Assembly (NCBI GenBank): GCA_002269645.1
Contig: NIVC01002661.1
Location: forward strand, 1-64,000
Length of the DNA: 64,000 nt
Direction: 5' to 3'
Origin: Macrostomum lignano
Lineage: Eukaryota
Shown: piece after piece, positions 1 to 60,775 of the stretch
Layout: every line of letters begins with the position of its first letter
How positions within the stretch are numbered: position 1 is the stretch's first letter
The notes under the pieces: generated by a model
Database searches by the model: none
What the model was told of the DNA's origin: nothing
Seen by the model: the letters and a program-made list of their open reading frames with translations, nothing else
Position numbers and translations under genes: made by a program

Positions 1-331
1 CTCAATGAATTCTAAAATGGGTCTGAACCAACTGCTACATTGGTTTGAACAATCTCTTTGACCGCCGGCGAGCTACTGGTGGTAATTTAAACCGGCCTTA
101 ATGCGTCCAAACACCTAGCTTAGCTCGTTATGTTTCCGGGTTTCGTGCATAAATAGAGCGCGACTACTGTAAGTAGTATTTTGAAAAGTTCTTCGGTACT
201 TTTAGTACTTCGACTTAAATTACATCGCGCTTGTAACTTTTTCTTCCAAAGCTCAGATCTACTTACTATTAGCAGATGTAACAAGGGCTTTTTGTAAATA
301 TTGTGGTACAGTCAATTGACTTGAAACTCAC

Positions 332-1017
332 CCCATCCTTGAACTTCATGCTCAACTCCCGCTGGTTCAACAGTCGAACACTGGCCGAGGCCGGGTCGCT
401 GCCAAAGTACCTGGCCAGGACGAGGTGCTGGGATGCATAGGCTGACGCTGGCAGGTTGTCAGCCGGTGCAACGCCGCAGTGACAGCCGACTTGTCCGCCT
501 TCGTTCAGCAGCTTCAGCAGTGCGTAGCCTTCAAGTTGGTCAGCAGGGCGATGCCGGTAAGAGTAGCGGAGCGCCACCGAGACGGCGGCTGGCAGCCGAG
601 CTGTCGGAGCTGCTGGACCACCGACGACGGCAAGTCAAAGTGGGTCAGCCTTGCGGACTCATTCTGATCGGCTCCTGAATAACTTGCGCCTGCCAGTTGC
701 GGGGTCACCCGCAGTGCGTCTAGTTCCGTCTTTATTATCGATTGGTCATCCGGATTGTCTTCGAAGTCCGGCTGCGACCGCTGTTCAGCTTCTTCGGTCT
801 CTGCGTCCTCGCCCGCGGCTGTAAATCCGCACTCCGCCATCAGGCAGTGCAGGGTGAGCAGCAGCCAGTGAAACTGACTCTCCGGGCGGAGGTCTGCTAC
901 CAGGCGACTCAGCGATGGACAAAGTTGGCCATCTTCTGTGCAGATTTCCGACACCTCCTGGGGGAGTTGGTGCGACCTCGCCATTGTGCTGCATGCAGCC
1001 AGGCAACAGACTGTGCA
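332..1017 (-). CDS. FBXO7: Exon of an FBXO7-like (Fbxo7/PI31 'FP' domain) protein; gene continues beyond the window start; one apparent frameshift near 575
   Basis: Joining ORFs 514-1077 and 269-577 gives ...HWLLLTLHCLMAECGF...PPSRW / LRYSYRH...EGYALL...QHLVLARYF...RELSMKFKDG. This resembles, from memory, the FBXO7 FP-domain motifs LIHLLMLESGY, PEKWK..YKLQY.H and LSRLFKD. Acceptor ttggcgcag at about 1018; donor GTGAGT at 331. No F-box visible in the window. Confidence 0.55.
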
Positions 1018-1220
1018 CTGCGCCAAATAGGCCAGTGTAATTTCCAAACCAATATCTACAAAGTCACTGTTACTCATTTTAGAAGTTCACTTTCTCCATA
1101 GACAAAAGACTCGCCACTTCTCTTCCTCGAAACCAGCTGTTAGAGATCGTAGAGGAAGTAATCGAGTTGCAACCTTTTATTTGGGAAGTGACAAAAATAG
1201 CATACCTCATTGAATCACCA

Positions 1221-1854
1221 GTGACTGAAGCCCACCCCGTGACTGAAGCCCACCCGTGACTGCAGCCCACCCGTGACTGAAGCCCACCCGTGACTGAAGC
1301 CCACCCGTGACTGTAGCCCACCCGTGACTGAAGCCCACCCGTGACTGAAGCCCACCCGTGACTGCAGCCCACCCGTGACTGCAGCCCACCCGTGACTGCA
1401 GCTCACCCGTGACTGCAGCCCACCCGTGACTGCAGCCCACCCGTGACTGTAGCCCATCCTTGACTGAAGCTCACCCGTGACTGCAGCTCACCCGTGACTG
1501 CAGCCTACCAGTGACTGAAGCCCACCCGTGACTAAAGCCCACCCGTGACTGTAGCCCACCCGTGACTGTAGCCCACCCGTGACTGAAGCCCACCCGTGAC
1601 TGCAGCACACCCGTGACTAAAGCCCACCCGTGACTGCAGCCCACACGTGACTGCAGCCTACCAGTGACTGAAGCCCACCCGTGACTAAAGCCCACCCGTG
1701 ACTGTAGCCCACCCGTGACTGCAGCCCACCCGTGACTGCAGCCCACACGTGACTGCAGCCCACCCGTGACTGAAGCCCACCCGTGACTAAAGCCCACCCG
1801 TGACTGTAGCCCACCCGTGACTGTAGCCCACCCGTGACTGAAGCCTACCCGTGA
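1221..1854. repeat. 17-bp minisatellite (GTGACTGAAGCCCACCC)n
   Basis: Direct inspection; explains the spurious GxSHGW ORFs at 1079-1893. Confidence 0.95.
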
Positions 1855-2599
1855 CGGTGTGTTGAAACTCATTTTAATTATTTGTTTCAACATAAAAGAT
1901 TGAAATAACTTTTATTTAATTTTATTAAATCGCTCCAGAATTTACATTTTAGATAAAAATATACCCAGATCTGTAAAATTAGCTAACTCAGGACAAAGAA
2001 TTTCCTGATCCCATTTTTGAGTGCTCTTTGTTGACCAAATGCTTGGACTGTGAGCTCTCAGTTATTGATTTGTGGAGCAAAAAGAGCGAATTTAGCATTT
2101 TTGTTGGTTCATTTTCACAGCTGAAGGTCATAGGCTTAGATAATAACTAGAAATGTGCACTGGAATTCATAAGGCCGCGAGTTTTCTATCAGATTCTGAA
2201 ACTTCTAAACACAAATTAAAACACAAAGTTTTCAGCCATCAATGCCTAAAACAGCAAATCTAAGCAGGTGATGCTGATTTACCTGCAGTCATGCAAGTGG
2301 TCAGAACAAGCCCTTAACCGTAAAATCTGGTGATAAACAATAAGTTGATTGACAGCAGCTGCGGTCCCTGGACTGATTAAAATCTTAGAAATCTTAAATA
2401 AGTCGCTCAAAGCCGAAATTCGGTAAATAAACTGGAAAATTCCAACATGAAAAGCTGGCGAAGCCGTTCTCTAGCGATGGTGATATTCTGTGACACCTGG
2501 GAGGTCCGGTTTGTTTACATCAGACGTGCATAAATGCGAGCCTGTTTTACAGGCAAGAAACTCAGCATCATTCTCGACTGCTAAAATCAAAAGTAGGTC

Positions 2600-4841
2600 A
2601 TGAAGAATTCTCTTGCCCTCCTGCTGCTGCTGGCCGCGTCCACCTGTCTGGTGCAAGGTGATCTAACTTAAATGTTTTCGTAACTATTTTATGCTTCTGA
2701 GCAATTTGAATTCAAACTTCATTGTTGCCTTGTCATGCCATCGCTTTAGGCCAATCCGATGAAGACGACTTGCGAGCTACCTGCTGAGGCGGTTGGGCAA
2801 AACCGGCTCCATCGCTCGGCCTATCGCTCCCGGCAACGGAAGCCAGACGGTGGACTTGTCTCTGGGCCTGTCTCTGCTGCGAGTGGCGTCACTGAAGGAA
2901 TCGTCTGCTGAGATGGACGTGTGGATCCAGATGGTGAGAGAATTCTCTTCACACTCGAGCGTAGGTGGGGGGCCCAGGACGATTGGAGGTTTCGTGTGAA
3001 GGGGTTGCTGACGGAGAAACCGGGACACAGAGGTGTCCGCAGCGCGGTCCCCCTCCGGAGAGTCCAGGAGATGGATGGTTGCTCGCCCGGTAGCCCTTCG
3101 GTAGCGGACGAGCTGGCAGAGATTCTCGGGCCTGAAAACGTCGGAGACTCTCTTATTCTCAATCGCCACTCCGCAGTTCTGGAAGGACCGAGACTCAGCT
3201 GGGACCCGGCCGAATTCGGTGGTCTGAGCCAGATCGCCCTGCCCTCCAATCTGCTGTGGATTCCGGATGTTCGACCTTTCCATGCGTAAGTGTCTCGTGA
3301 CAGGCTTCTAAGATAAAGCTTCCATCTGCCCGCTCTGCTCCATCATTACAAGTATTCCCTCCGCCACCCGACCACCTCAGCGGGAACTACATACCGGACC
3401 GGGTCTCCCCAGTCCGAGTGGTCGCCATGAGCAGCTCTGACGTCATCTACGTACTGCCGGCCAGGCTGCGGGCTCCCTGCGACCGTCTGCGAAACAAGTC
3501 GATGAGCTGCCGCCCGGTGCTGGGCAGCTGGGTGTACAGCGGCCTCTTGCTGAACACGACGCTGAGCTCCAGCCCCTTCAATATGGCCGATTTTGAGCCT
3601 CTGGCCGGTTGGGACGTGGCCAGAGCCACCGCCAGGAGGGTCGAAACCTACTACGATTGCTGCCCAGAGCCCTACATCTCCATCAACTACAGCCTTGTGT
3701 GAGTAAACCCTACATCTCCATCAACTACAGCCTCGTGTGAGTAAACCCTACATCTCCATCAACTATACAGCCTTGTGTGAGTAAACCCTACATCTCCATC
3801 AACTATACAGCCTTGTGTGAGTAAACCCTACATCTCCATCAACTATACAGCCTTGTGTGAGTAAACCCTACATCTCCATCAACTATACAGCCTTGTGTGA
3901 GTAAACCCTACATCTCCATCAACTATACAGCCTCGTGTGAGTAAACCCTACATCTCCATCAACTACAGCCTCGTGTGAGTAAACCCTACATCTCCATCAA
4001 CTACAGCCTCGTGTGAGTAAACCCTACATCTCCATCAACTACAGCCTCGTGTGAGTAAACCCTACATCTCCATCAACTATACAGCCTTGTGTGAGTAAAC
4101 CCTACATCTCCATCAACTACAGCCTCGTGTGAGTAAACCCTACATCTCCATCAACTATACAGCCTTGTGTGAGTAAACCCTACATCTCCATCAACTACAG
4201 CCTCGTGTGAGTAAACCCTACATCTCCATCAACTATACAGCCTTGTGTGAGTAAACCCTACATCTCCATCAACTACAGCCTTGTGTGAGTAAACCCTGCA
4301 TCTCCATCAACTACAGCCTTGTGTGAGTAAACCCTACATCTCCATCAACTACAGCCTTGTGTGAGTAAACCCTACATCTCCATCAACTATACAGCCTTGT
4401 GTGAGTAAACTGACAGACGAATACTCTAGAATGCCACATAGTTCTTAATTCTTTAGCAGAAAAAAGCATCTATTCACAGAATGTGCGTTGTAGTCTACTC
4501 CTTGGGCGAAGATAAAGAGTAGGCAATTAGCGAATTTTCACGCCACGGTCGCAAGTTTACTATGCGCCTAATTACGATCGTGGGCCAACGTATTTATGCA
4601 CTTGAATCCTGGCTTCAATGCATTTTAAACTTTGCTAATTGCCTACTCTTAATCTTCACTAAAAGAGTAGGTTATAACACATTTAACGCAATATTTTGTG
4701 CATTTTGTAAGGAAACTCGAATTGGTGTCTTGTCGGTGAACCATGCTGCCCCCCGCAAATATTCACAGGCTCGACAAGAAGCGCAAGGGCAAGGATGGCA
4801 AGGGCAAGGGCAGGCCTCGCGGAGAAGAAGATGATGACTGA
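2600..4841 (+). CDS. Secreted acetylcholine-binding protein (AChBP)-like gene (nicotinic receptor ligand-binding domain without TM region), 5 exons; two 1-nt deletions (~2772, ~3189)
   Basis: Exons 2600-2657 (signal peptide MKNSLALLLLLAASTCLVQG), 2750-2933 (..RPIAPGNGSQTVDLSLGLSLLRV..MDVWIQM), 3177-3285 (FWKD[P]RLSWDPAEFGG..LWIPDV), 3381-3698 (..C-x9-C..GSWVYSG..YYDCCPEPYISINYSL) and 4769-4841 (VLDKKRKGKDGKGKGRPRGEEDDD*). All introns are GT-AG with matching phases 1,0,2,2. AATAAA at 4873. Confidence 0.85.
3670..4409 (+). repeat. 19 x 38/40-bp tandem repeat made of the AChBP exon-4 end plus its splice donor
   Basis: Unit CCCTACATCTCCATCAACT(AT)ACAGCCT(T/C)GTGTGAGTAAA; the first copy is coding (PYISINYSLV). 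Units counted by hand. Confidence 0.95.
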
Positions 4842-5138
4842 TGAATCTCGAAGACTGCCAAACTTTGATCTCAATAAACGTCTCAAGCTAACAATATTAA
4901 ACAATCGGAGATTTTCTTGAAAAAATAAATCGCAATGCCACCAAATAGATTAAGATGTCTTGAAACTGCACAACTACGAGCTTCCAATTACTCCAGACCC
5001 GACTCCAAGTCTCAAGTGGTACTTTTGTACTTTAGCGCATATGTCGCTTACCCCATAAGCTTGACCAGATGTCAAGACTTTTTAAGCTAAATAAATTCTC
5101 CAAAATTTCTGAATAAATTTTCAACACTACAATACAAG

Positions 5139-5424
5139 AATAATAATACTTTTAATTGACTACACCTTTCCTAATGGGCAGAGGTGCAACCGACAGCTTC
5201 TGAAGGCTGCGTACGGCTGTTCAGTCCAAGGACTGGGGGGTCGTCACACACAGCCTCAATTATCCCAGCTAATGCTGGCACCCATTTTACAGCTGGATGA
5301 ACTGAAGCAATGCAGAGTTAAGTGTCTTGCTCAGGGACACAAATTGTTCCGAGTGGGTCGAGAATCGAACCCCCGACCTTTCAGTCGTGAGTCCGACGCT
5401 CTGATCACTAGGCTACTGCAACCC
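5139..5424 (-). mobile_element. tRNA-derived CORE-type SINE
   Basis: Minus-strand head with A-box-like TAGCCTAGTGATCAGAGCG and B-box GGTTCGATTC. 5281-5340 (CCCATTTTACAGCTGG..GTTAAGTGTCTTGCTCAGGGACAC) resembles the MIR/CORE consensus (CCCATTTTACAGATG..GTTAAGTGACTTGCCCAAGGTCAC). Short (TAT)n tail. Confidence 0.7.
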
Positions 5425-6600
5425 ACTCCTAGGCTACAACACTGCATGCTATAAACGTCAAATCCAATTATCAGTAGCGTTTTTAACAAAAAAGATTTAA
5501 AACGATGTCCAGAACCTTTGTTAGGTAGACAGTAGTATAGCTAACTTTTTACTTGCAAATATGTGAAAAACGCAAATAAGACGAACTAGCTAAAATTGTG
5601 ACTGCGCCGCGCCAATGCAGCTTCCAAACTGTCCTGTGCGCTTAAATAAGTTTTGTCAGTGGGGCAGAGCGCGCAACCGTATTGTCGAAGAATTGTGCGA
5701 GAATAAGGATTGCACTGTTGCGGCCCAGCAGTCCAACGCATTTGGTGCCGCATCTGTGTGTCGCAACGGGCTGCTTCAATGAGCAAAGAGAGCTAATCAA
5801 TAACTTCAGTCGATAGTCAGAATTCTAGGAAACGATAGTCAGAAGAGGGCAGAAATCGAGACCTGACTCACATTATGTACAAGGAAATTTGTAAGCAATG
5901 GACCAAGAACCAGTTGGGGTCAGTCACAATCTTCGGCAGATGCTTCTATTGAAAACATGCGAATTGAAAAGCAACACTGTGCTGCAGCGGGAGCAAAGCT
6001 AAGCACGGGACGGTGCAGGAGAGGCTGCTGGTGTACCGATTAGAAAGCTGGCGATGCGCTCAGCATACTGCTACAAGTAGCTAAGGCAGTAAGACTGACC
6101 GATTTAATAAGCATTTTATGCGCACAGTTTTAAAAACCTTTGCAGAAGGTGTTTTACAAAGTCGAAAGATTAAATGATCGCTAGGGAGAAGGGAGAGCTT
6201 TGGTCAGTTAAATAAACCAAAACATGAAGGCGAAATCAGCATTGGGTTTGCAGCTTATCAAGTGCAGGCAGGTTTGCAAACTTCAGCGGTTCTTTGGTAA
6301 TTCGGGAGGCGCTGAAGCAGACAGTTACAGATCAGGCTTGGTCTGACTGCAGTTGTCTCTCAGCGCCTGCAGGACCTCCGGGTCTCTCATTGCGCTGTCA
6401 AACGAACGGTTTTGATGAGGACTCGCGCACAGGCAAGGCGCCTCTCGGAGCAGTAGCTCAAATGTGTGCGCCATCAGAGCCCGGAAAACTCCCAAGAAGA
6501 CGCTCTACTAGGAGCTAACGGGTGAAGAACACCGGAAGTCCTACTACTACTACTAATATACATGTAAATGGTCAACAACAGCGCAGAGTTGGTCGGAGGG

Positions 6601-9600
6601 TCAGTGACGCGACATGTCCACAGCCATGTCTTCTTCCTCGTCGATGTCCTCCATGTCTCCGGCCTGACAGCAGCCGGTGGTGGAGTCCTCTCTGGCCGGT
6701 GAGGTACGGCCCAGCGGGCTGCCCAGCTGGCTGCCCTGGTCTTCGGCAGTCTCGCCGGAACTGCCGGCCACCTTGATGCCAAGACTCTTGGGTATCTTGG
6801 CCAGTATGTGCACTCCGGCGCCGAAACTTTTGAACCAGGCGCCGCCCTGCTCCCAGGCGGTGTCCACGGACAGATAGAACGGGTGATAGGGCTGTCGGCA
6901 TTCGATGGGTCTCAGGTTTGTGTAAATCTGCAAGTTTATTTGTTACAATGTCTGGAGATGTGGCACAATAGTAGAGAAGTGAAACATGATTCACTGACTT
7001 AAGCTCATAATTGACTGCTCATAAATCACCGTGTGCTCATTAGGGATTGTGCTCATAAGGGACTGTGCTCATAAGGGACTGTGCTCGTAAGGGACTGTGA
7101 TGATAAGGGACTGTGCTCATAAGGGACTGTGCTCATAAGGGACTGTGCTCATAAGGGACTGTGCTCATAAGGGACTGTGCTCATAAGGGACTGTGCTCAT
7201 AAGGGACTGTTCTCATAAGGGACTGCGCTTACTGCTTACCTTGAACACCTCGAGTGCGTCGATGGGCAGCTCACTGTAGGAGTTTGAGGCCGGCAGGTAG
7301 TACCGCCTCTCATCAGCGCCCGGACACTGGCTGAACTGCAGGAACTCGGAGCCGTCAATATTAGTCAACACCTGGAACTGGCCCCAGGTGAGCGACTTGT
7401 GCCGACTGGTGCCACGGACGCAGAAGTGAACTCGATTGAAGAACCACAGCGTGTTGAGTAGAGCCTAAAATCAAGTTCATGTATTCGGCTGCATTCTCTG
7501 CTACTTTTATCAAATAAACAACAACCGTTATATAAGTTTAATTTTGGAAAACAACAACAACTGTTTGGGTGAGGGTTATTAAATAATTATTGATCGACCC
7601 CACCATACGAATGTACATCAAGAGTACAAGTGTACATTGTGGCTTTATTAATTTTGTGTTTATTCATTTCATTTCACTTCCTTTCTAAAAACCTTAATGT
7701 CTCCGAAACTTCATTTCTCCGAAACTTCATTTCTCCGGAACTTCATATCTCCGAAACTTCATATCTCCGAAACTTCATATCTCCGAAACTTCATATCTCC
7801 GAAACTTCATATCTCCGAAACTTCATATCTCCGGAACTTCATATCTCCGGAACTTCATATCTCCGAAACTTCATTTCTCCGAAACTTCATATCTCCGAAA
7901 CTTCATATCTCCGAAACTTCATATCTCCGAAACTTCATATCTCCGAAACTTCATATCTCCGAAACTTCATATCTCCGAAACTTCATATCTCCGGAACTTC
8001 ATATCTCCGAAACTTCATATCTCCGAAACTTCATATCTCTGAAACTTCATATCTCCGAAACTTCATGTCCCCAAAAACTTCATATCTCTGTAACTTCATA
8101 TCTCCGAAACTTCATATCCCTGAAACTTCATATCTCCGGAACTTCATATCTCCGGAACTTCATATCTCCGGAACTTCATATCTCTGAAACTTCATATCTC
8201 CGAAACTTCATATCTCTGAAACTTCATATCTCTGAAACTTCATATCTCCGGAACTTCATATCTCCGGAGCTTCATATCTCCGGAGCTTCATATCCCTGAA
8301 CCTTCATATCTCCAATAAGCCTAACCCCAACGGAGATATAAAGTTTCGGGGTTGGGAAAAAGGCTGCTATTTCGGAGATATGAAACCTTCAAGTTCTTGC
8401 TAAAAAAAGTCCTGGATAAAACAACTCGCATCATTGAAGTGCATTATTAAAGGTGTCTTTGTAGCTATTAAAAAACTTCATTCGATTTGACGGTTTGACA
8501 CGACTTATTTTTACCCATTCACGTGTGTCCCTGCTCAGAGCCAGAAGCAATTCCATTTGCCCAATCTGCAATTCATTCTTTGTCTCAGCAATAATTATAA
8601 ATATTAGTATTCATAATTTCACATGCCGAAAGCAGAGAACAGAAAATGTTCGGCGTCAGCCGTCATAATAATTAATGCCGCTAGCAGCCGACTGCTTCCG
8701 CAGTTGCGCTCTGTTTCAATAAGCATATGCAAGTGTCCGATATACCAAGTGGACAGCCCTGATTCAACAAGCCCATAATGCCTGCTCTCCAGTCTACCGG
8801 TAATTTGGCAGTTGAACAGAGTGACTTTTCCTACTCAACAAAGCTGTATGACTCATATCGTGCCGATATAATTGTTTCTCTGTTGCCAGGCGCAAGTTGA
8901 AAGCTCAATTTGTACAACATAGTCGAGGAAATACAACTGGAAGCAAAAAAAGCAGCACAGAGCCGCTAATTTAGCAGAGGAAATCGAGCTTTCTGGAGAT
9001 ATGAGACTCCATAGAACAGGTGAACTCCACCCCACCTTTGGCTTGGATACCAAAAATCTGCATTTAGCCACGCACGAGTGCCCCTCCGAGCCATAGACAT
9101 CTCGCATTTGTTTCGGACGCGCGGGGACCCAATCGGTGGACAATGTCGCCTATATTACAGTCGAGCCGAGGAAACAGCAATCAGACGAATAAAAGCGCGG
9201 GGGGGCCATTCAGACCAGGAAATATATGGGCGCCTTGTGCAATAAAATGTAATTGGCAAAGTAGCGAATTTCTGGCAAAAGAGCGGAAAGTCGTTTCAAG
9301 CAGAGAGATCGAGAGGATGGGTAGAAATACGACCTAATGTGTCTGTCTCCTTTTGCAGCCACGGTAAGAGATGGAATTCCAAGGACCGAGCACAATGGAT
9401 ACTGTCTCCTGCAGCCAGATAGTTAGCCCCCGCTTTAGGCAGCCTCTTGTGACAAGAGACGAAAATTGATATAAGTTGAAAAAAGACAACAGAGGAACTG
9501 AAAAACACACTGGTGGATGCTCTGCTGTGTCAGCATCAACTGCCGGTAGCGAGCCAACAAGTTCAAACTTCGCGGCTGCTCCTAGTGAAGTATTTTTTCT

Positions 9601-12600
9601 TCAGCGGCTCTTTAAACCTGAAACAATGTAGCGAACTGGTGGCGGGACCGCTCTGATCTCGACGGTTCTCGGCATTCCCTTGTTTTATATTGGCTGACCG
9701 AATTCACGGGTGTTTCACGAGTCGCTCCCGAGCGCGCCGGGAGGCCCCGCGCGGCTTATTGCCAATTATAACCATCGGGGGCCCGCGCTCTTCCACACGG
9801 GCTATGCGTATAAATATACTGTATATATATAAATAGTCTTTTGAATTTTTACGCTCCAACTTCATGTTGCTTGTCCCCAAATCGGGTTCATCATCTGCTA
9901 CTATGCCGGCCCGATGTATTGTGTTGAACCAATAAGGCGCTTCAACAGGCCACGGCGGTCCAAAACCCATGGGAGCGGAAGCCAGGGGGACCGGGGGGGG
10001 GGGCGCAATAAACCTTCGCTCAGGTGGCTTCAATAAATGCTGCGATTTTTCTCTTTTTTATACAATTTTATTATTTCATTTTTTACACTGCACAAAATAA
10101 GCGGTCCTTTATACTCCGGAAGAATTGGGAAATGCGACCACATTGCTCCCGGTGTAAATTCTGTCTGGAGAATCTGTTATCTAAACAAATTGCCCCATGT
10201 CCAAGAGAATTAATAGTGTGCTTGCACAGGAAATCCTGACACGCAAGACTGGCCCGCTTTCGCCCCAAATTCAGGGCGGAACCGCCGCTGACCCATTAAA
10301 GATTTAAGAGATTTGTTTCCGTAATTACCTGCTGCAACCCCGGCGCAGCTGACAAACAATTTCAGATTGACAAGCTCAGGTGGCGTGTGAAAATTGCTGT
10401 ACTTCGCTAAAAGCTCAACCAAGTGATCCGAAAAAGGATGCCGATCAGTGCAAGACCATCTTTTCTTCGGTTCGTTTAATCCTTCCCTGTACAGCATGTT
10501 GCTTATGAAAATTTTGAATTCGGAATTACACTCCCCCCCCCCCGACCTATTTTGATTATTTCATCCTCCATTTTTTTTTATTATTACAAGCCGCGGCGTC
10601 GGTCGCAATAATGATACGAAGTTTGCCGCGATGCGGCTTCAGCCTCTGCCTTACCCCAGCAACCTCCTGATGCCCTCCTGAGCTTTCTTCTTTCCCCTTT
10701 GCTGCTGCGTCTTTCGGGGGTATAAAAGTTTAATAAAACACGGGCGGGGTTGCGGTGTGCATTTTTGGGTCGTTCTCCTTTTCTTTTTAAATTCGCAACC
10801 ATCTCTGGCTAGGAGCAGAAAATCGGGAGAAACTGCGAAGCGCGGGACAGTAAATTGGCTTGAGAGGCGGAAGCAGAGATGACACATCGCGAAGGCTTGG
10901 GACCAGCCAACTACTTGGGGTTGGCTGGTAGCTTCGAATGCTGGAAGAAAAACTTTTGCTTGTCAAAATCAAGAAGAAACGGATATTTCTGCTTCTGAAT
11001 GTCGCGCGTAGCCGCCCCGCCAATTTAACGATGCGATCTTTCTATCACTAATGCATTTTGTCTGTATACAGTTTGGTCTGTTCAATGAAAGAATTCAATT
11101 TTGATAGAGTTGCTACGAGCCTATCTCAAGAACTACCGGTTCTTTCATCATCTGCCGAAAATTACTTGATTAATCATTTAATGTTACATTTGCTGCCATT
11201 TTACAGTCACATATTCCGCTGTGTTACATCTTCCACCATGCTACATCTTCCGCTGTGTTACATCTTCCGCCATGCTACATCTTCCGCTGTGTTACATCTT
11301 CCGCTGTGTTACATCTTCCGCTGTGTTACATCTTCCGCTGTGGTACATCTTCCGCTGTGTTACATCTTCCACTGTGTTACATCTTCCGCTGTGTTACATC
11401 TTCCGCTGTGTTACATCTTCCACTGTGTTACATCTTCCACTGTGTTACATCTTCCGCTGTGTTACATCTTCCGCTGTGTTACATCTTCCGCTGTATTACA
11501 TCTTCCGCTGTGTTACATCTTCCGCCATGCTACATCATCCGCTGTGTTACATCTTCCGCTGTGTTACATCTTCCGCTGTGTTACATCTTCCGCTGTGGTA
11601 CATCTTCCACCATGCTACATCTTCCGCCTTGCTACATCTTCCTATTATCAGCCACAATCTCATCAAAGAAGCAATTAAACCCCATTCGGACTCTCACCTG
11701 CGGACTGTCTGTACCGAGCAGGCCAGAATTGAACAGATGCGCCGCGTGTTCAACCGACAAGCTCTTTGGCACCGCCGTTGTCCTAGAGATCGCCCGCAAC
11801 TCCTGCAGCCTGGCATTCATGGCGGTCCTCGTGCCAACGAATGCGGCGTCACGCAGAACCGAGCCGTTGTAGTTGTAGGTCTGCGCGGTGAGGATGGGGA
11901 TAGGGAGTGACTGTCGGTCCTTCAAATCGTCTGCACGAATGAGGACACTAGAACAGAGCAAGGTGCGCAATGCAAGGTGTAGTCGGTGAGCTAGCACCTA
12001 CTCCCTGTACACTTTAAGCTAAGATCGAGCCTCACAAAAGCGATAAGCTCTGCGAGGCCATCCTGAGAATTCTAAACTTTTGTTTCTCGTCTTTACTTCT
12101 TTGCAAAATAAATAGCAACTTCTCTGTAAATTTGCCATTCATGATCTAATAATGACTGTCAGAAAATCTGACGCAGACACTGAGACAGGCACTGAGACAG
12201 GCACTGAGACAGGCACTGAGACAGGCACTGAGACAGGCACTGAGGCAGGCATTGAGACAGGCACTGAGACAGGCACTGAGACAGGCACTGAGCCAGGCAC
12301 TGAGACAGTCACTGAGACAGGCACTGAGACAGGCACTGAGACAGGCACTGAGACAGGCACTGAGACAGGCACTGAGACAGGCACTGAGACAGGCACTGAG
12401 ACAGGCACTGAGACAGGCACTGAGACAGGCACTGAGACAGGCACTGAGACAGGCACTGAGACAGGCACTGAGACAGTCACAAAGACAGACACTGAGACAG
12501 GCACTGAGACAGGCACTGAGACAGGCACTGAGACAGGCACTGAGACAGGCACTGAGACAGGCACTGAGACAGGCACTGAGACAGGCACTGAGACAGGCAC

Positions 12601-15600
12601 TGAGACCATACGGTTCGAAAAGACCGGGTCTTTGCGTCACGACCCAGAAAAATCCCTCCAATCCAACAGCAGAACCGCTATGCGTGCCTTTTTCCCCAAC
12701 GCCCATTTAGTTTGCATTAATCCATCTGAAACTCGCGACAGGGAGTTTTCCTCCAAGCCTGAATATCTGTTCTCTTATTCCTGTGCTGGCCAAATATTGA
12801 AGCAGCGATATGAGAGGCTTGAAGGTGAGTAGGAGGGCGGGGAGGTCTCTAGGCCCGCGGCTTATCACAGAAATCTCAAACATGAACTTGCCAGCTACGT
12901 AATCTGCCAGTTGCTGCTGCATCCGCAGCCCAGCATCCACGCGCGCGCGCGCCATAATTTAATTAGCTGCGCCCCTCAAGAGCGGCCGGAGCCCCTTTTT
13001 TCTGCGCTGCCTTACATGATATGAAAATATCAATGAAATATTGACTTTGCCACCAAGGTTTGGACCAATAGTGCCTGATGAAGCCGAACTATTGCATGTA
13101 TTGCGGGTGCTTTCAGCTGCGCTAAGTGTAAAACCTTGTTATGATGTTTGGATGCAGAATAACTGGGAATTTGGTGTTTTAAATGCTAACCTGCTGAGTT
13201 TACTGGGATCAGGATACTTGCTAGAAATTGGGTGTTACTAAGATGATGGTTGAGCAATGTGCTCAGCAGACGGACGGGCTGCTCAGCTGAAGTATTTTCC
13301 TAGAAAGCATCAAAACAGCGGCCAGTGAATGCGATTCCGCCTGCTCAAAACCACAGCACATGAAGGCATCGCTTATGAAAGGAAATCGATTGGATAAAAT
13401 TCGATTCGAACTGATGGCCGGAGTAGGGAAATAATTGTGCGAAGGGTCGATGGGGATTAGGGACAGATGCCGTTGGATCGACGGCGCCGCTGTTAGAACA
13501 ATCCCTCTTGAGACCCGGCAGTGCCGGCCGTCTGCGATCTGTCTTGGGAATTTCTACTCAGAAGCAATTATTGCAAACTACTGAAAATTTGCTGCAGAAG
13601 AAATAATTAACAAAATGAGTTCAGACTGGGAGGGATTAACGGGGGGTTGCTCTCGGGTATTGGTAAATCTGACGATAAGCTTTGCTAGGCCGCTTGCCCA
13701 GTTCTCTAAATTGAGCCGGCTGAGCTGCGAGTCGCCACCGAGACCCATGCTGTCATTTCTCCAACACAGTTTCTTGTCAGTGACACCTTCTTTGCGAAAC
13801 CTTTGCTAGGCCTGTTCTAGTAAGGAATGTGCTCGGGCAGACAGGCACTGAGACAGGCACTGAGACAGGCACTGAGACAGGCACTGAGACAGTCACTGAG
13901 ACAGTCACTGAGACAGGCACTGAGACAGTCACTGGAACAGGCACTGAGACAGGCACTGAGACAGTCACTGGAACAGGCACTGAGACAGTCACAAAGACAG
14001 GCACTGAGACGCCACAGCAGACTCACTCTGAGATGCCGCTCCAGCGAGTGGATGAAGGCCTTGAGGCTCTCGGGCTCATACTCTTGGCCGTCCTTCTTCC
14101 TGGCCTGACTGACGAACTCCCGCAGGTGCTCGTCCAGCTCATCGGGCGGAATGCTCTGAACATCGCGCTGGTCGCCGCGCACCTGCTGAATAAAGCGGCA
14201 GATGACCTTCATATCCGACTTGGTCTTTCGCATCGTGTTGTGCACCCCGACGACTCCGGCGGCGCCGATGCCTCCCCGCCCGGGCTGTTGTTGTTGGCGG
14301 CGTCGGCTGCGGCGGCAGCGGCTGCGGCGGCGGCGGTGACGGCAGCGGATGAAGAAGTCGACGAAGATGAAGAATTGTTGCTGACAGGGTTCAGCGGCTG
14401 GCCGTCCCGGAGCTGCTGAGGCCGAGCTCGGGGGCTGTGAGACGACTTGGCGACGCCTCCTGTTGTTGAAGCAATGAGTGATTTGAGATTAAGATGAAAG
14501 TGGCAGAGTCCAACCCGAACTCTAACACTGGTTTCAGTATATGGATTCAGGTCATCTTCAGGCTGTCCTGGACGCTGACAGCGGGGCTATAGGAGCGGCT
14601 TGGGCGCAAACAAGTCGGGAGCAACTGGGTCCCGCTTATTCTCACTTAATCGCAACCGAAATTTTTCAATTGACAAAAATAACAAAAAACATTAGCGATT
14701 TTAAGCTAGCGAGGCTCCATAAAGCTGAAAGGAAGCGACTCGGAAGTCCGTGATGCAGCTGATAGACAGTCGATGCAAATGACAAAGGGAAAAAGCTGAC
14801 ACAACAATATTTCGGCCTGAGCAGACAGCCGGGCACCAGCAGTTTCCCCATTCAACTCAGTCAGAGGGATTTTCTACTTTTTCGGGAAAGTCATCAGCTT
14901 CATCAGGTTTCCCAGATTTTTTAGAAACTAATCAACACTACCTGGAAGCCAGGGGGTGCTTGAGCTGCTGCGAATTGGTTGATAGGACAACTGCAAGGTG
15001 CGGATCGGAGACTGAGCCCTCCCGCTATGATATAAAACCCTAGGGTAGAAAATGCCGAGCAGAGCAGCCGGAAATTTCCCGGAAATTCCCCGCAGGCTCA
15101 CCGAGCAGCGGAGCAGCCGGCAAAGCGGCGCCGCCCGCTGACGCGTCTCCGCCAAGTCCGGACTCGGAACCCGCCGGGCTGTCCACCGCCTGTGGCTCCA
15201 GCGGCGGTGGCGGCAGCGGCGGCGGTGGCGGGACTGGCAGCTGCGGCTGAGGCGGCAGTGACGGGAGCGAGGCCGGTTTTCTACCTTCCGCAGCGGCCGC
15301 GGCGGCGGCAACCGCGGAGGGCCCGAAGCCGTGCGCGGCTGTCATGTGGGCCTCCAGCTGGCGCAGGCTGCGGGCTGGCGAGCCGCAGATCAGGCACTGG
15401 AAGTCAGGCAGGACGCCGCCTCCTCCGCTGGCTGCCGCGGCGGCCGCCGCCGCTGCCATCAAGCCGAAATGCGGCGGCGGCGGCGGAGGAGGCGGCGGCG
15501 GAGGCGGCGGTGGTGGCGGCCCGAGCGGTGGCGGGTGCGCATGCTGGGGGAACCCGGACGCGCCGCCCGATGTGACGGCGGCAGCGGCGGCAGCAGCGGC

Positions 15601-24849: not shown

Positions 24850-26619
24850 GAGAGTGAATCACAGCGCCAGTAGAGAGTGAATCACAGCATCAGTAGAGAG
24901 TGAATCACAGCATCAGTAGAGAGTGAATCACAGCATCAGTAGAGAGTGAATCACAGCATCAGTAGAGAGTGAATCACACCGCCAGTAGAGAGTGAATCAC
25001 ACCACCAGTAGAGAGTGAATCACACCGCCAGTAGAGAGTGAATCACAGCATCAGTAGAGAGTGAATCACAGCATCAGTAGAGAGTGAATCACAGCATCAG
25101 TAGAGAGTGAATCACACCGCCAGTAGAGAGTGAATCACACCGCCAGTAGAGAGTGAATCACACCGCCAGTAGAGAGTGAATCACAGCGCCAGTAGAGAGT
25201 GAATCACACCGCCAGTAGAGAGTGAATCACAGCATCAGTAGAGAGTGAATCACAGCATCAGTAGAGAGTGAATCACAGCATCAGAAGAGAGTGAATCACA
25301 GCATCAGTAGAGAGTGAATCACAGCGCCAGTAGAGAGTGAATCACAGCATCAGTAGAGAGTGAATCACAGCATCAGTAGAGAGTGAATCACACCGCCAGT
25401 AGAGAGTGAATCACACCGCCAGTAGAGAGTGAATCACAGCATCAGTAGAGAGTGAATCACAGCGCCAGTAGAGAGTGAATCACGCCGCCAGTAGAGAGTG
25501 AATCACAGCGCCAGTAGAGAGTGAATCACACCGCCAGTAGAGAGTGAATCACAGCATCAGTAGAGAGTGAATCACAGCATCAGTAGAGAGTGAATCACAG
25601 CATCAGAAGAGAGTGAATCACAGCATCAGTAGAGAGTGAATCACAGCGCCAGTAGAGAGTGAATCACACCGCCAGTAGAGAGTGAATCACACCGCCAGTA
25701 GAGAGTGAATCACAGCATCAGTAGAGAGTGAATCACACCGCCAGTAGAGAGTGAATCACAGCGCCAGTAGAGAGTGAATCACAGCATCAGTAGAGAGTGA
25801 ATCACAGCGCCAGTAGAGAGTGAATCACAGCATCAGTAGAGAGTGAATCACAGCATCAGTAGAGAGTGAATCACAGCATCAGTAGAGAGTGAATCACAGC
25901 ATCAGTAGAGAGTGAATCACAGCGCCAGTAGAGAGTGAATCACACCGCCAGTAGAGAGTGAATCACACCGCCAGTAGAGAGTGAATCACAGCATCAGTAG
26001 AGAGTGAATCACACCGCCAGTAGAGAGTGAATCACACCGCCAGTAGAGAGTGAATCACAGCATCAGTAGAGAGTGAATCACAGCGCCAGTAGAGAGTGAA
26101 TCACAGCATCAGTAGAGAGTGAATCACAGCATCAGTAGAGAGTGAATCACAGCATCAGTAGAGAGTGAATCACAGCGCCAGTAGAGAGTGAATCACAGCA
26201 TCAGTAGAGAGTGAATCACAGCATCAGTAGAGAGTGAATCACAGCATCAGTAGAGAGTGAATCACAGCATCAGTAGAGAGTGAATCACAGCATCAGAAGA
26301 GAGTGAATCACAGCATCAGAAGAGAGTGAATCACAGCATCAGTAGAGAGTGAATCACAGCGCCAGTAGAGAGTGAATCACAGCGCCAGTAGAGAGTGAAT
26401 CACAGCATCAGTAGAGAGTGAATCACAGCATCAGTAGAGAGTGAATCACAGCATCAGTAGAGAGTGAATCACAGCGCCAGTAGAGAGTGAATCACAGCAT
26501 CAGTAGAGAGTGAATCACAGCATCAGAAGAGAGTGAATCACAGCATCAGTAGAGAGTGAATCACAGCATCAGTAGAGAGTGAATCACAGCATCAGTAGTG
26601 AGTGAATCACAGCGCCAGT
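24850..26619. repeat. 23-bp minisatellite (AGAGAGTGAATCACAGCATCAGT)n, about 1.8 kb
   Basis: Direct inspection; variants CAGCATCA/CAGCGCCA/CACCGCCA. Confidence 0.95.
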
Positions 26620-27934: not shown

Positions 27935-28518
<584 letters not shown>

Positions 28519-31802: not shown

Positions 31803-32561
<759 letters not shown>

Positions 32562-33262: not shown

Positions 33263-34221
<959 letters not shown>

Positions 34222-38411: not shown

Positions 38412-39855
38412 GGTCTGTCTGATCTGTTGGGTCTGTCTGATCTGTTGGGTCTGTCTGATCTGTTGGGTCTGTCTGATCTGTTGGGTCTGTTGGGTCTGTC
38501 TGATCTGTTGGGTCTGTCTGATCTGTTGGGTCTGTCTGATCTGTTGGGTCTGTCTGATCTGTTGGGTCTGTCTGATCTGTTGGGTCTGTCTGATCTGTTG
38601 GGTCTGTCTGATCTGTTGGGTCTGTCTGATCTGTTGGGTCTGTCTGATCTGTTGGGTCTGTCTGATCTGTTGGGTCTGTCTGATCTGTTGGGTCTGTCTG
38701 ATCTGTTGGGTCTGTCTGATCTGTTGGGTCTGTCTGATCTGTTGGGTCTGTCTGATCTGTTGGGTCTGTCTGATCTGTTGGGTCTGTCTGATCTGTTGGG
38801 TCTGTCTGATCTGTTGGGTCTGTTGGGTCTGTCTGATCTGTTGGGTCTGTCTGATCTGTTGGGTCTGTTGGGTCTGTTGGGTCTGTTGGGTCTGTTGGGT
38901 CTGTCTGATCTGTTGGGTCTGTTGGGTCTGTCTGATCTGTTGGGTCTGTCTGATCTGTTGGGTCTGTCTGATCTATTGGGTCTGTCTGATCTATTGGGTC
39001 TGTCTGATCTGTTGGGTCTGTCTGATCTGTTGGGTCTGTCTGATCTGTTGGGTCTGTCTGATCTATTGGGTCTGTCTGATCTGTTGGGTCTGTCTGATCT
39101 GTTGGGTCTGTCTGATCTGTTGGGTCTGTCTGATCTGTTGGGTCTGTCTGATCTGTTGGGTCTGTCTGATCTGTTGGGTCTGTCTGATCTGTTGGGTCTG
39201 TCTGATCTGTTGGGTCTGTCTGATCTGTTGGGTCTGTCTGATCTGTTGGGTCTGTCTGATCTGTTGGGTCTGTCTGATCTGTTGGGTCTGTCTGATCTGT
39301 TGGGTCTGTCTGATCTGTTGGGTCTGTCTGATCTATTGGGTCTATTTGATCTGTTGGGTCTGTCTGATCTATTGGGTCTATTTGATCTGTTGGGTCTATT
39401 TGATCTGTTGGGTCTGTCTGATCTGTTGGGTCTATTTGATCTGTTGGGTCTATTTGATCTGTTGGGTCTGTCTGATCTGTTGGGTCTGTCTGATCTGTTG
39501 GGTCTATTTGATCTGTTGGGTCTGTCTGATCTGTTGGGTCTGTCTGATCTGTTGGGTCTGTCTGATCTGTTGGGTCTATTTGATCTGTTGGGTCTGTCTG
39601 ATCTGTTGGGTCTGTCTGATCTGTTGGGTCTGTCTGATCTGTTGGGTCTATTTGATCTGTTGGGTCTGTCTGATCTATTGGGTCTGTCTGATCTGTTGGG
39701 TCTGTCTGATCTGTTGGGTCTATTTGATCTGTTGGGTCTGTCTGATCTGTTGGGTCTGTCTGATCTGTTGGGTCTATTTGATCTGTTGGGTCTGTCTGAT
39801 CTGTTGGGTCTGTCTGATCTGTTGGGTCTGTCTGATCTGTTGGGTCTGTCTGATC
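38412..39855. repeat. 18-bp minisatellite (TCTGTCTGATCTGTTGGG)n
   Basis: Direct inspection; source of the GLSDLL/WVCLIC ORFs. Confidence 0.97.
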
Positions 39856-40839
39856 TTACAGTTCTGATTTAACCAGAGTGACTTTGTAAGAGCAGCGATC
39901 GTGTCCAACACGTGCAGGTCAACCACATTTTCAGCAGACTTCCATTGCCAAATTGCCAATTTACGATCGGAGGCTAATCAATATTCATGCTGTTGAGGCC
40001 AGCAGGGAGTAATTAGTTTAGCGCTGCTGTCTTTTGCAGTACTATTAATAAGAGGACAGCTTATCCAAAATGAGTTAATCGAATGCAACTAAAATGGCTG
40101 GTTGACTACTGCATGCATCTCAGGATTCTCAATCTACATATGCGCTCGCAGTGGCGTAGAGGCGGAGGGGCAGTCTGGCTTTTGGCCATAGACAAAAATA
40201 TATACTAATTAAATGAACTTTCTAAATTAATAACTATTTTAATTGACTGTTTTTGGCACTTTAATGACCTGATCTGTGGCATTTTGTGGCCATTCCGTGG
40301 CCTGATCTTTTAATTTTTCTGCTTGGTCTTGATTTTCTTCACTTTGATAACTTTGTTTTTTTATTCTTAAAAATTTGATGGGCATGATAGGCTATATAGT
40401 TACATAATATGGCACAATAGCAATAGGAATGATTACGAGCATCCTACTGAGTCTTCCGCACATGCAAGCGCGCCAATACTGTACGCAGGCACAGCACTCG
40501 TACACACGCTCACACAGGGTGTACAGCAGCATTTTGACTTTCTAATCGTCAGGCATGTACACTCTCTGTGCCATTTTAAATTTTTCACTTTTTCATTTAA
40601 AGGTTGACAACGAGCGAGTCACCATCACGGCCAGGTCCATCCCAGCGACCTGTTGCGCCGACGGCGACCCCAGCTGGCATGCCACGTCATCCGCTCCGAG
40701 TCGCGGTGCTCACAGCCGGAGCAGGAGGTTCTGCTGCTGAAGCTGCGACTTCCTGTTGGTGGACGCCGACGCACCGGAATTCTGTCGGATAAATGGCCTA
40801 CGTTTGACAGCGTATTTTCTTTTTGTTTTACTTGTTGTT

Positions 40840-58227: not shown

Positions 58228-58323
58228 TGGATGGGAGCATAGATGAAGGAATTAGTGGATTGCTCAACTCACGGTTCTCGGTGGGCTCAAGCGAGGGGTG
58301 TGTTTCATAACCTCGATATTTCA

Positions 58324-59055
58324 CAAGCTCCAATCTCCACAAGCTCCAAACTCCACAAGCTCCAATCTCCACAAGCTCCAAACTCCACAAGCTCCAATCT
58401 CCACAAGCTCCAAACTCCACAAGCTCCAAACTCCACAAGCTCCAAACTCCACAAGCTCCAAACTCCACAAGCTCCAAACTCCACAAGCTCCAATCTCCAC
58501 AAGCTCCAAACTCCACAAGCTCCAATCTCCACAAGCTCCAAACTCCACAAGCTCCAAACTCTACAAGCTCCAAACTCCACAAGCTCCAATCTCCACAAGC
58601 TCCAAACTCCACAAGCTCCAAACTCCACAAGCTCCAATCTCCACAAGCTCCAAACTCCACAAGCTCCAATCTCCACAAGCTCCAAACTCCACAAGCTCCA
58701 AACTCCACAAGCTCCAATCTCCACAAGCTCCAAACTCCACAAACTCCAAACTCCACAAGCTCCAAACTCCACAAGCTCCAAACTCCACAAGCTCCAAACT
58801 CCACAAGCTCCAAACTCCACAAGCTCCAATCTCCACAAGCTCCAAACTCCACAAGCTCCAATCTCCACAAGCTCCAAACTCCACAAGCTCCAAACTCCAC
58901 AAGCTCCAAACTCCACAAGCTCCAATCTCCACAAGCTCCAAACTCCACAAGCTCCAAACTCCACAAGCTCCAAACTCCACAAGCTCCAAACTCCACAAGC
59001 TCCAATCTCCACAAGCTCCAAACTCCACAAGCTCCAAACTCCACAAGCTCCAAAC
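58324..59055. repeat. 16-bp minisatellite (CTCCACAAGCTCCAA(A/T))n
   Basis: Direct inspection. Confidence 0.97.
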
Positions 59056-60775
59056 TTCAGAAGCTCCTGTAGTGTGAGCATCTTTGCGTGTATTTTGTTG
59101 TAAATTGACTGCATTAGTTTCTATATTGTTATTGAATTGTTATTTTGCTTTAGTTAGTCATACGTTTTTTTGTGTACTTTTTCCTTGTTAGTTAGAATCT
59201 AAAATTGTAAACAGGTTAGAGTTAGACGCCGTTTGTGACTCAGCGGAGGGTTGAGTTTGTCTGCGAACCCCAGCTTTGCGCGGTCAGCCAATCAGAACCG
59301 GCCTGGACCCTGGCACGCGGCAAGTTTCAGTTCTACCCGGCGCCGCGGGCACAGTTCAATTCGGCTTAAGCAAGCGGCCGGCCAGACGACCACCACCCGG
59401 CTTGAGGGGGGTTTTGAGGGGTTGTGACTCTGGCTATATATGAAAGTGTGTTTTGGCAATCGGATCTCGCTTCTCTCTCCTTTTCCCGGTTTGTCTTGTC
59501 CAGTTCCCGGCCGGTGGCCCGATTTTTCCCTCCTCTTGTTGGTTCGCGCTTTGAGGCGTTTTGATTCTATCACCCCCGGTCCATTTCTTTGTCCCCGCCC
59601 AACCGCAGTAGTCTTGTGGCGTAACGTCTACGGCATTCCTGTCTGAAGTCGTCGCTATCAAGCGCGGTTAGATAGAGACTGTCGGATCTGATCAAGTACG
59701 CGGCCTCGACCCCGAGGGCCTCAGTGTTACACTGAAGGGCAGTGCCGATAGAATTTAGTCGGTACTCCGTTGAACGGTCGATTCGGCAGGGCTCTCGTTT
59801 GAGAGTAGGTTCTGGTTTAGGCCAGGGGTTAGGAGTCTTCTCCGTGGTCCTGTGTTCGGTGCCTTCTTCTTCTTCAGCTGAGATCCGCTTGTCAGTGCGT
59901 ATATAATCATTATTTATTAACCGTTATTGTCGTTTTGTCAACTCTAGTTATCTGCGTCGTTTGTCTAAATCTTGTAACTCAGCTAATCAAATTAAACCGT
60001 CAATCAAGTTAGTTGTTCTTGAAATAGGATTATCACTCTCTAAATCTTTCGGTTTGTGTTCCCTCGTGTTCTTTATTTTCTTGTACTGTACCTGCGGCTA
60101 TTGGAGAAAGACTGGTAGGACTCGCCGACCGGCGATAGGCGATTAGGATTAATAGCTTTAAAATCTTCGAACGCTCCAAGTAGGTTTGTCTAGGGCCTAA
60201 ATAATTTCTCACCGTGCATGCTATTTATCTAATTGCCTATTTATCACAAGTGGAGCCCCTGGGAATCCAATAGTTAGCAGGCGGCAGTTTATTGGTAGGC
60301 GCTCTAAGTGAGCAAGCTTAGACTAAAATTCAACGAGTCTGTTCCAGGCTCGTAGCGGCTATTTCGTCAACCACGCAGTGTGCAGCAACTCCGCATTAGG
60401 TGTGGTTTTGCGGTTGGCCAGTTACCCCAAAATACTGAATAGGATTTAGGAGTGGGAAAAATAAAATTGACCTTCTAAAACTAAAATTAGCACTTTAATA
60501 GAAACTTGCGTGTGAAAGTAGATTTTGTTTACAGTTGAAAATTTTATTAGTGTTTACCAGCATAGTCTGCGAGTGCGCGCACTAGAGAGTACATTGGTTG
60601 AATTTGTCTCAGTGTACATTCAGTTTTTCTTATCAGTTATTGCCAGTGCGAGCGAGGCGACCGATTCCGCTCAGTAGATAAAATAGAAAGCTAGATTATT
60701 GAAATTGTTATAGCTTTACAAGTTGTACTTTCTGAAGTTGCAGTAATAGAAATTCCAATTGGTTGAAACTTAGCA

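Follow-up and report, generated by a model that had tools for sequence, protein, structure and literature searches.

A transmembrane-less acetylcholine-binding-protein-like gene with a charged tail exon and a minisatellite at a splice donor in the flatworm Macrostomum lignano

Introduction

Acetylcholine-binding proteins (AChBPs) have classically served as structural stand-ins for nicotinic acetylcholine receptors (nAChRs); they have been described mainly in molluscs, in one annelid and in spiders. The molluscan proteins (from Aplysia californica, Lymnaea stagnalis and Pleurobranchaea, together with the AChBP-like genes of Haliotis, Saccostrea and Lottia) consist of a signal peptide and a ligand-binding domain (LBD) only, with a length of ~225–250 amino acids (aa), and exhibit a loop B Trp, a loop C of the form Y-x-CC-x-x-x-Y, an aromatic residue in loop D, a variable and non-canonical Cys-loop without the FPFD motif, and basic residues directly after strand beta10. 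All of these features, the signal peptide as a predicted one, recur in the gene described here, which lies at 2600–4841 on the forward strand of the first 64 kb of contig NIVC01002661.1 (assembly GCA_002269645.1) of the flatworm Macrostomum lignano; this 64-kb stretch is referred to as the window, and its positions 1–14841 equal our locus L003 (NIVC01002661.1 1-14841). The molluscan AChBPs are also the best sequence matches of the Macrostomum protein in the PDB. What separates the two, apart from the phylum, is an identity of only 26–31%, a Cys-loop spacing of x10–x12 in the molluscan proteins compared with x9 in Macrostomum, and a 23-residue tail, rich in K, R and G and then acidic, that is found in Macrostomum.

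Outside the molluscs, the AChBP of the annelid Capitella teleta and those of the spider Cupiennius salei are likewise LBD proteins lacking transmembrane (TM) segments. The Capitella structure (4afg) matches the model of the Macrostomum protein with a target-normalised template-modelling score (TM-score) of 0.86, whilst the spider proteins differ in their Cys-loop spacing of x16; a charged tail exon as present in Macrostomum has been reported for neither. The spider proteins were described as having atypical Cys-loop lengths, with their phylogeny left unresolved (PMC4569296). With alpha7-type and other alpha nAChR subunits, the Macrostomum gene shares the motifs WIQM.W, WxPD, GSW and YxCCxEPY, the fold and a phase-2 intron after loop A, but it differs from them in lacking TM1–TM4 and FPFD and in having x9 instead of x13 in the Cys-loop.

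Gene structure and domain content

Three-frame translation of 2300–5200 revealed five exons that together encode a predicted signal peptide, a complete nicotinic LBD and a charged tail of 23 residues (Table 1). The annotated 247-aa protein of a sister contig (L004) was regenerated by an exact exon-chain search with exons of 58, 185, 110, 318 and 73 nucleotides (nt), and the product of the window gene is also 247 aa once one base is restored in exon 2 and one in exon 3. The elements named in the original prediction, which had been made from the sequence of the window alone, could all be located: the putative signal peptide and full LBD, the motifs DVWIQM, GSWVYS and YYDCCPEPY, the Phe of loop A, a C-x9-C Cys-loop (C-DRLRNKSMS-C) without FPFD in exon 4, a tail exon followed by AATAAA, and the stop directly after YSLV that the frame meets if it remains unspliced. 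The length of 110 nt proposed for exon 3 after restoration of one base matches the intact paralogues, and the junction of exon 4 with the tail exon (3698–4769) is backed by these annotated paralogues as well as by spliced transcripts of a related species.

Table 1. Coordinates of the gene and of the features associated with it in the window
Feature	Position	Strand	Description
Exon 1	2600–2657	+	start codon, then predicted signal peptide MKNSLALLLLLAASTCLVQ; phase-1 donor GTGATC; identical in intact paralogues
Exon 2	2750–2933	+	184 nt here, 185 nt when intact; N-terminal helix, beta1-beta2, loop D Trp78 (...EMDVWIQM); contains frameshift 1
Frameshift 1	2766–2767	+	apparent frameshift: missing A (GAC-A-GAC in L004 and L005); from alignment to intact contigs
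Exon 3	3177–3285	+	109 nt here, 110 nt when intact; FWKDPRLSWDP...LWIPDVRPFH, loop A Phe116; contains frameshift 2
Frameshift 2	3186–3188	+	apparent frameshift: C-run one C short (GACCCGAG in L004 and L005), C missing at 3187; from alignment to intact contigs
Exon 4	3381–3698	+	remaining LBD (AGNYIPDR... to ETYYDCCPEPYISINYSL(V)); phase-2 donor after beta10 (INYSL-V)
Exon 4 motifs	3381–3698	+	Cys-loop C151-x9-C161 with sequon N156-K-S; loop B Trp168 (LGSWVYSG); loop C Y209/C211-C212/Y216 (YYDCCPEPY)
Minisatellite	3670–4410	+	38–40-nt unit (Tandem Repeats Finder: 38, also 78 nt), 19 copies; unit = last 29 nt of exon 4 plus GTGAGTAAA donor
Exon 5, coding part	4769–4841	+	tail (V)LDKKRKGKDGKGKGRPRGEEDDD; stop TGA at 4839–4841
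AATAAA polyadenylation-signal consensus	4873–4878	+	32 nt past the stop; from sequence only

In the 247-aa product, Neur_chan_LBD (PF02931, 1.1e-24) was the sole Pfam domain found. The best matches of a phmmer search of the PDB, at 1e-26 to 1e-22, were Aplysia AChBP (26% identity), chimeras of it with alpha7, and alpha7 on its own, with a 3-residue gap in the Cys-loop. An AlphaFold2 model of the monomer, computed from a 75-sequence alignment, displays an N-terminal helix and a beta-sandwich (mean predicted local distance difference test score, pLDDT, of 91.4; predicted template-modelling score of 0.83), and its Foldseek matches in the PDB are nAChR extracellular domains and AChBPs, with target-normalised TM-scores of 0.85–0.90 and root-mean-square deviations of 1.6–2.8 Å. 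The Pfam and PDB sequence matches lie well above chance level, and both they and the fold point to homology with the extracellular LBD of nicotinic receptors. By inspection the N-terminus fits a signal peptide: K2 precedes a hydrophobic region LALLLLLAASTCLV (residues 5–18, mean Kyte-Doolittle value 2.66), and V-Q-G would occupy positions -3 to -1. The protein exhibits four N-x-S/T sequons, and the one at N156, inside the Cys-loop, is invariant in all five family members.

Gene copies, relatives and selection

In M. lignano the gene exists in at least five copies, near-identical or paralogous (Mlig018664 and Mlig011179 groups), of which the window locus is one. Intact versions of the gene with identical coding sequence, encoding 247 aa, are present on the sister contigs NIVC01000864.1 (L004) and NIVC01000628.1 (L005). 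A word-indexed protein search retrieved a 250-aa protein (91% identical by BLASTP), whose cluster is made up of M. lignano proteins, and a 252-aa protein, P0002 (67% identical). The cluster includes PAA75741.1 and PAA79548.1 (Mlig018664g5 and g6, 247 aa), PAA56211.1 (g2), PAA85864.1 (Mlig011179g1) and PAA56111.1 (g4), the last being the GenBank entry for the window copy: a product of 114 aa only, placed at 3427–4841 and starting at a Met inside exon 4. A word-indexed profile search added Aplysia AChBP and one unnamed match. In the databases the intact proteins are named "hypothetical protein" or "Neur_chan_LBD domain-containing protein". Our literature searches brought up no description of a flatworm AChBP (their coverage was incomplete, so this absence is not proof), and neither Mlig018664 nor Mlig011179 occurs in the searched supplements of M. 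lignano papers. Further paralogues were not found elsewhere in the window.

P0002 is encoded on two short contigs from SRR28338164 and SRR28338165. Of these, the transcript contig L001 could be aligned to the window as three abutting blocks whose ends coincide with the borders of exons 2, 3 and 4, which makes it a spliced complementary DNA of another species; its reading frame passes directly from ...YNLVL into NPKRNNDEEKRKGDKRRGDDQDDD followed by a stop. A more distant homologue, P0010 (236 aa; L008, SRR28338166), is 44–47% identical, depending on the alignment. It is expressed, yet both Cys-loop cysteines are gone (replaced by T and G), the loop A aromatic has become Ile and the charged tail is missing, whilst the loop length, the RLRN-x-S sequon, the loop B Trp and the CC of loop C are retained. 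We regard P0002 and P0010 as orthologues, encoded by spliced transcripts of two other species, of which one retains the tail. Function may have diverged within the family.

The family is under purifying selection: Nei-Gojobori ratios of nonsynonymous to synonymous divergence (dN/dS) are well under 1, at 0.21–0.23 between M. lignano and P0002 (dS ~1.1) and at 0.29–0.32 between the M. lignano paralogues. We are dealing with a real, conserved flatworm AChBP-like gene that is already in the databases as an uncharacterised protein, and of which the tail exon and the splice-site minisatellite are the distinctive parts.

Cys-loop length and loop A in comparison with relatives

When 1.84 billion representatives were searched exhaustively with HMMER, 3194 matches were obtained, and the best 158 LBD domains were used for comparison. 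Of these, 72 come from proteins that end no more than 45 residues past the LBD without a TM segment; once the five macrostomid proteins are set aside, 67 TM-less relatives remain. Their named members include the "soluble acetylcholine binding protein" of Pleurobranchaea and the AChBP-like proteins of Saccostrea, Haliotis and Lottia. Cys-loop spacing is x13 in 68/80 TM-bearing relatives, compared with a range of x8 to x23 in TM-less ones, where x9 occurs in 9/67 and x10 in 11/67. Phe at loop A is found in 13/80 TM-bearing and in 16/67 TM-less relatives. Both the short loop and the Phe are ordinary, being common among TM-less relatives: they are hallmarks of channel loss rather than oddities. 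Variable Cys-loops of AChBPs have been described before (PMC4569296).

The top database matches also included several proteins (P0011, P0012, P0013 and P0021) predicted at 850–1200 aa with 2–5 LBD matches and several TM blocks; in these cases gene prediction has probably merged tandem receptor genes.

Ligand-binding site and proposed function

The agonist-site positions are occupied by W78 (loop D), F116 (loop A), W168 (loop B) and Y209, C211-C212 and Y216 (loop C), such that every position of the aromatic cage and of the vicinal cysteines is filled, with Phe in place of the usual Tyr at loop A. We envisage that the protein would assemble as a homopentamer in which the residues of loops A–C provide the principal face and W78 the complementary face of an aromatic cage at the subunit interfaces. 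Having no channel, such a pentamer would sequester acetylcholine or related cationic ligands outside the cell, and the short, glycosylatable Cys-loop (C-DRLRN-x-S-x-C) may reflect a lost need for pore coupling. Judged from its sequence, the gene likely encodes a secreted, TM-less nicotinic LBD, an AChBP-like protein that would sequester acetylcholine or similar cationic ligands, with the frameshifts in the window copy being artefactual.

Two observations weigh against this assignment: the Phe found at loop A instead of Tyr, and P0010, which lacks both the Cys-loop cysteines and the loop A aromatic, so that cholinergic binding may not be conserved across the whole family. A secreted LBD scaffold with a non-cholinergic role, whether in capturing a different amine or a toxin from the diet or the environment, or in acting on matrix or calcium via the acidic C-terminus, would accommodate the expression of P0010 despite these losses. 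It would also fit the tail, the character of which is kept between M. lignano and P0002 and suggests a function beyond ligand buffering. Pearl-oyster proteins of the AChBP family are reportedly active in biomineralisation. In addition, the physiological roles of AChBPs are unclear even in known cases (PMC4569296). On the other hand, the aromatics of loops A–D and the vicinal cysteines are present in M. lignano and in P0002; among the 67 TM-less relatives, the number that share the residue ranges from 61 to 67 according to the position. We consider the non-cholinergic role fairly unlikely and prefer the sequestration of acetylcholine.

Frameshifts in the window copy

The two frameshifts had been placed at 2772 and 3189 in the original prediction; the intact paralogues move them to after 2766 and into the C-run at 3186–3188. 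With the first one relocated, the N-terminus reads ...SDEDRLASYLLRRL. Alternative splicing around the exon 2 frameshift (donor 2651, acceptor 2765) was tried and rejected, as it yields an in-frame stop or the wrong phase; the intact copies use acceptor 2750.

Comparison with the sister contigs L004 and L005 revealed the two missing bases as the sole differences between the exons, with 0 substitutions in 741 nt of coding sequence. Over window positions 1–3669, outside repeats, there are 7 single-base deletions (3, 194, 210, 304, 586, 2766 and 3187) and 1 insertion relative to both sister contigs, together with about 0–2 substitutions, none of them coding. From 4411 on the pattern is reversed, with ~40 substitutions in 2.6 kb (~1.5%, to 7030) and few indels. 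This switch in divergence from the two sister contigs, between 1–4410 and 4411–7030, falls at the minisatellite; it suggests either gene conversion or a contig end that is chimeric or of low coverage and was joined within the repeat.

Since the differences are almost only single-base deletions and substitutions are near zero, the frameshifts are, on this comparison of contigs, very probably uncorrected consensus errors at the contig end. Canu was used to assemble the PacBio reads and Pilon to polish the result, of which 180 Mb lie in blocks that are at least 95% identical (PMC5730564); we infer that poor unique placement of short reads in such near-identical blocks hampered polishing here. What weighs against an error is that both frameshifts stand in the deposited assembly, where GenBank annotates just the truncated 114-aa product for this copy. 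A genuine loss is conceivable: Mlig018664g4 could be a very young pseudogene with two real 1-nt deletions in one redundant copy, at least three others being intact in this neopolyploid genome, and so highly redundant a genome (PMC5730564) would tolerate losing one. Against this, the 8 single-base indels, two of which are the frameshifts, are evenly distributed across ~3.0 kb that include coding as well as non-coding sequence, a density at which ~2 would be expected in the 741 nt of coding sequence, exactly the number observed. Moreover, 7/8 of the indels are deletions in the window and substitutions are near absent, a ratio typical of long-read consensus error and not of divergence. A pseudogene thus seems distinctly unlikely. 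An annotation that starts at the exon 4 Met is the expected outcome of two upstream frameshifts, and the truncated GenBank product is probably an assembly artefact. If the frameshifts are errors, this copy would most likely be intact and its protein identical to PAA75741.1 and PAA79548.1.

The charged tail and the absence of a transmembrane part

The absence of TM helices after the LBD, as originally predicted, was borne out by three lines of analysis. Pfam gave no match to the TM domain (PF02932) in the 247-aa product; there is no hydrophobic 19-mer after the signal peptide (maximum Kyte-Doolittle value 1.13); and tblastn with ten full-length receptor relatives found no TM-domain homology in the whole 64-kb window, all matches stopping at 3696–3699. 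Neither feature of an nAChR subunit, the four TM helices or the C-x13-C loop with FPFD, was found. Splicing of exon 4 to downstream TM exons had been raised as a way in which the prediction could fail; no TM segment follows at the end of any annotated copy in M. lignano or of the transcripts from two other species. That the gene is merely the 5' part of an ordinary nicotinic subunit gene, with the tail exon as a minor alternative 3' end and full transcripts reaching TM exons, is extremely improbable, as nothing beyond its general possibility speaks for it, whilst the silence of tblastn past 3699, the opposite strand of the next annotated gene (6601–14233) and the TM-less ends of all these copies and transcripts speak against it.

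The tail comprises 9 K/R, 7 D/E and 5 G in 23 residues, basic first and then acidic, and is conserved in the M. lignano paralogues and in P0002. In the AlphaFold2 model the last 23 residues have a pLDDT of ~62, and the tail is probably disordered. We can only speculate that the tail might tether the protein to matrix or heparan sulfate, bind calcium or be a propeptide cleaved by a convertase.

Minisatellite at the exon 4 donor

The junction of exon 4 and intron 4 is straddled by a minisatellite that the original prediction had not included, each unit of which repeats the end of exon 4 with its donor (Table 1). The number of donors differs between loci: 19 in the window, 20 in L004, 20 in L005, 9 in L006 and 32 in the older paralogue L007; the array spans 11073–11857 in L004, 7101–7415 in L006 and 7160–8377 in L007. 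Splicing from the first donor (3699) alone stays in frame with the tail exon and leads to 247 aa, whereas use of any later donor takes in the TGA after YSLV and predicts a tail-less protein of 224 aa (...INYSLV, then stop).

Origin of the gene

The phase-2 intron after loop A is common to Macrostomum, Haliotis and Saccostrea, yet the gene structures otherwise differ. The exons measure 49, 134, 155 and 358 nt in Haliotis and 58, 137, 149 and 346 nt in Saccostrea, compared with the five exons of Macrostomum given above. Haliotis and Saccostrea keep an intron before the beta1-beta2 segment, which Macrostomum lacks, and have their stop in a large last exon; Macrostomum, unlike them, has an intron before FWKDPRL and a phase-2 intron after beta10 that leads to a separate tail exon. 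Exon 3 (110 nt) is presumably the conserved 110-nt nAChR exon, and exon 2 (185 nt) a fusion of the 140-nt and 45-nt exons of vertebrate CHRNA genes.

The different intron losses and the different termination are compatible with independent truncation of receptor genes, and the intron losses together with the separate tail exon suggest, as far as gene structure can tell, an origin independent of the molluscan AChBPs. Equally compatible is one old AChBP gene that retained both introns. In a neighbour-joining tree of the 158 LBDs, the phylogeny proposed with the original prediction recovered the Macrostomum clade with 100% bootstrap, but its placement among AChBPs and nAChRs was not recovered, the attachment receiving 0–5%, such that the tree favours neither origin. 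A bolder scenario, which we put forward tentatively and think more likely wrong than right, is that macrostomids made their own soluble AChBP independently of molluscs and annelids. In this scenario a nicotinic gene would have been cut at the border of the extracellular domain and TM1 through a new donor and a new 73-nt tail exon. As this donor now lies in a minisatellite of variable copy number, which of the 9–32 identical donors is chosen could decide whether the secreted isoform has the tail (247 aa) or lacks it (224 aa).

Genomic context

The neighbouring gene on the reverse strand (6601–14233) is annotated with a product of 313 aa, in which Pfam found DUF3504 and, weakly, QRICH1; the same neighbour also adjoins the gene copies on L004, L005 and L006. 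The Mlig011179 copy has Tom7 and Med20 genes upstream instead, and no gene was called in the 6 kb fetched downstream of it. In the window, a short upstream open reading frame (ORF) at 2534–2584 (MRACFTGKKLSIILDC, then stop) closes before the start codon; in the annotation of the Mlig011179 locus the same ORF lengthens the N-terminus in frame (269-aa PAA85864.1). Such an extension would leave the signal peptide buried and is probably an annotation artefact.

Mini- and microsatellites are dense in the window, with periods of 4–49 and up to 238 copies: arrays lie at 1216–1855, 7032–8313, 11209–11642, 12174–12606 and 24850–26613, further ones at 27935–28518, 31804–32561, 33266–34219, 38412–39856, 58322–59067 and at other positions, and many long mechanical ORFs of the window fall inside such arrays. 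Abundant mini- and microsatellites have been reported for the M. lignano genome (PMC5730564).

Conclusions

A conserved, selected AChBP-like family in Macrostomum extends this kind of protein to the Platyhelminthes. Transgenesis has been published for M. lignano (PMC5730564) and, together with its transparent body, makes the animal suited to addressing the in vivo role of such a protein, be it synaptic buffering, a toxin sink or a matrix-bound decoy. Its distinct gene structure, moreover, offers a concrete handle on the repeated origin of soluble LBD proteins.

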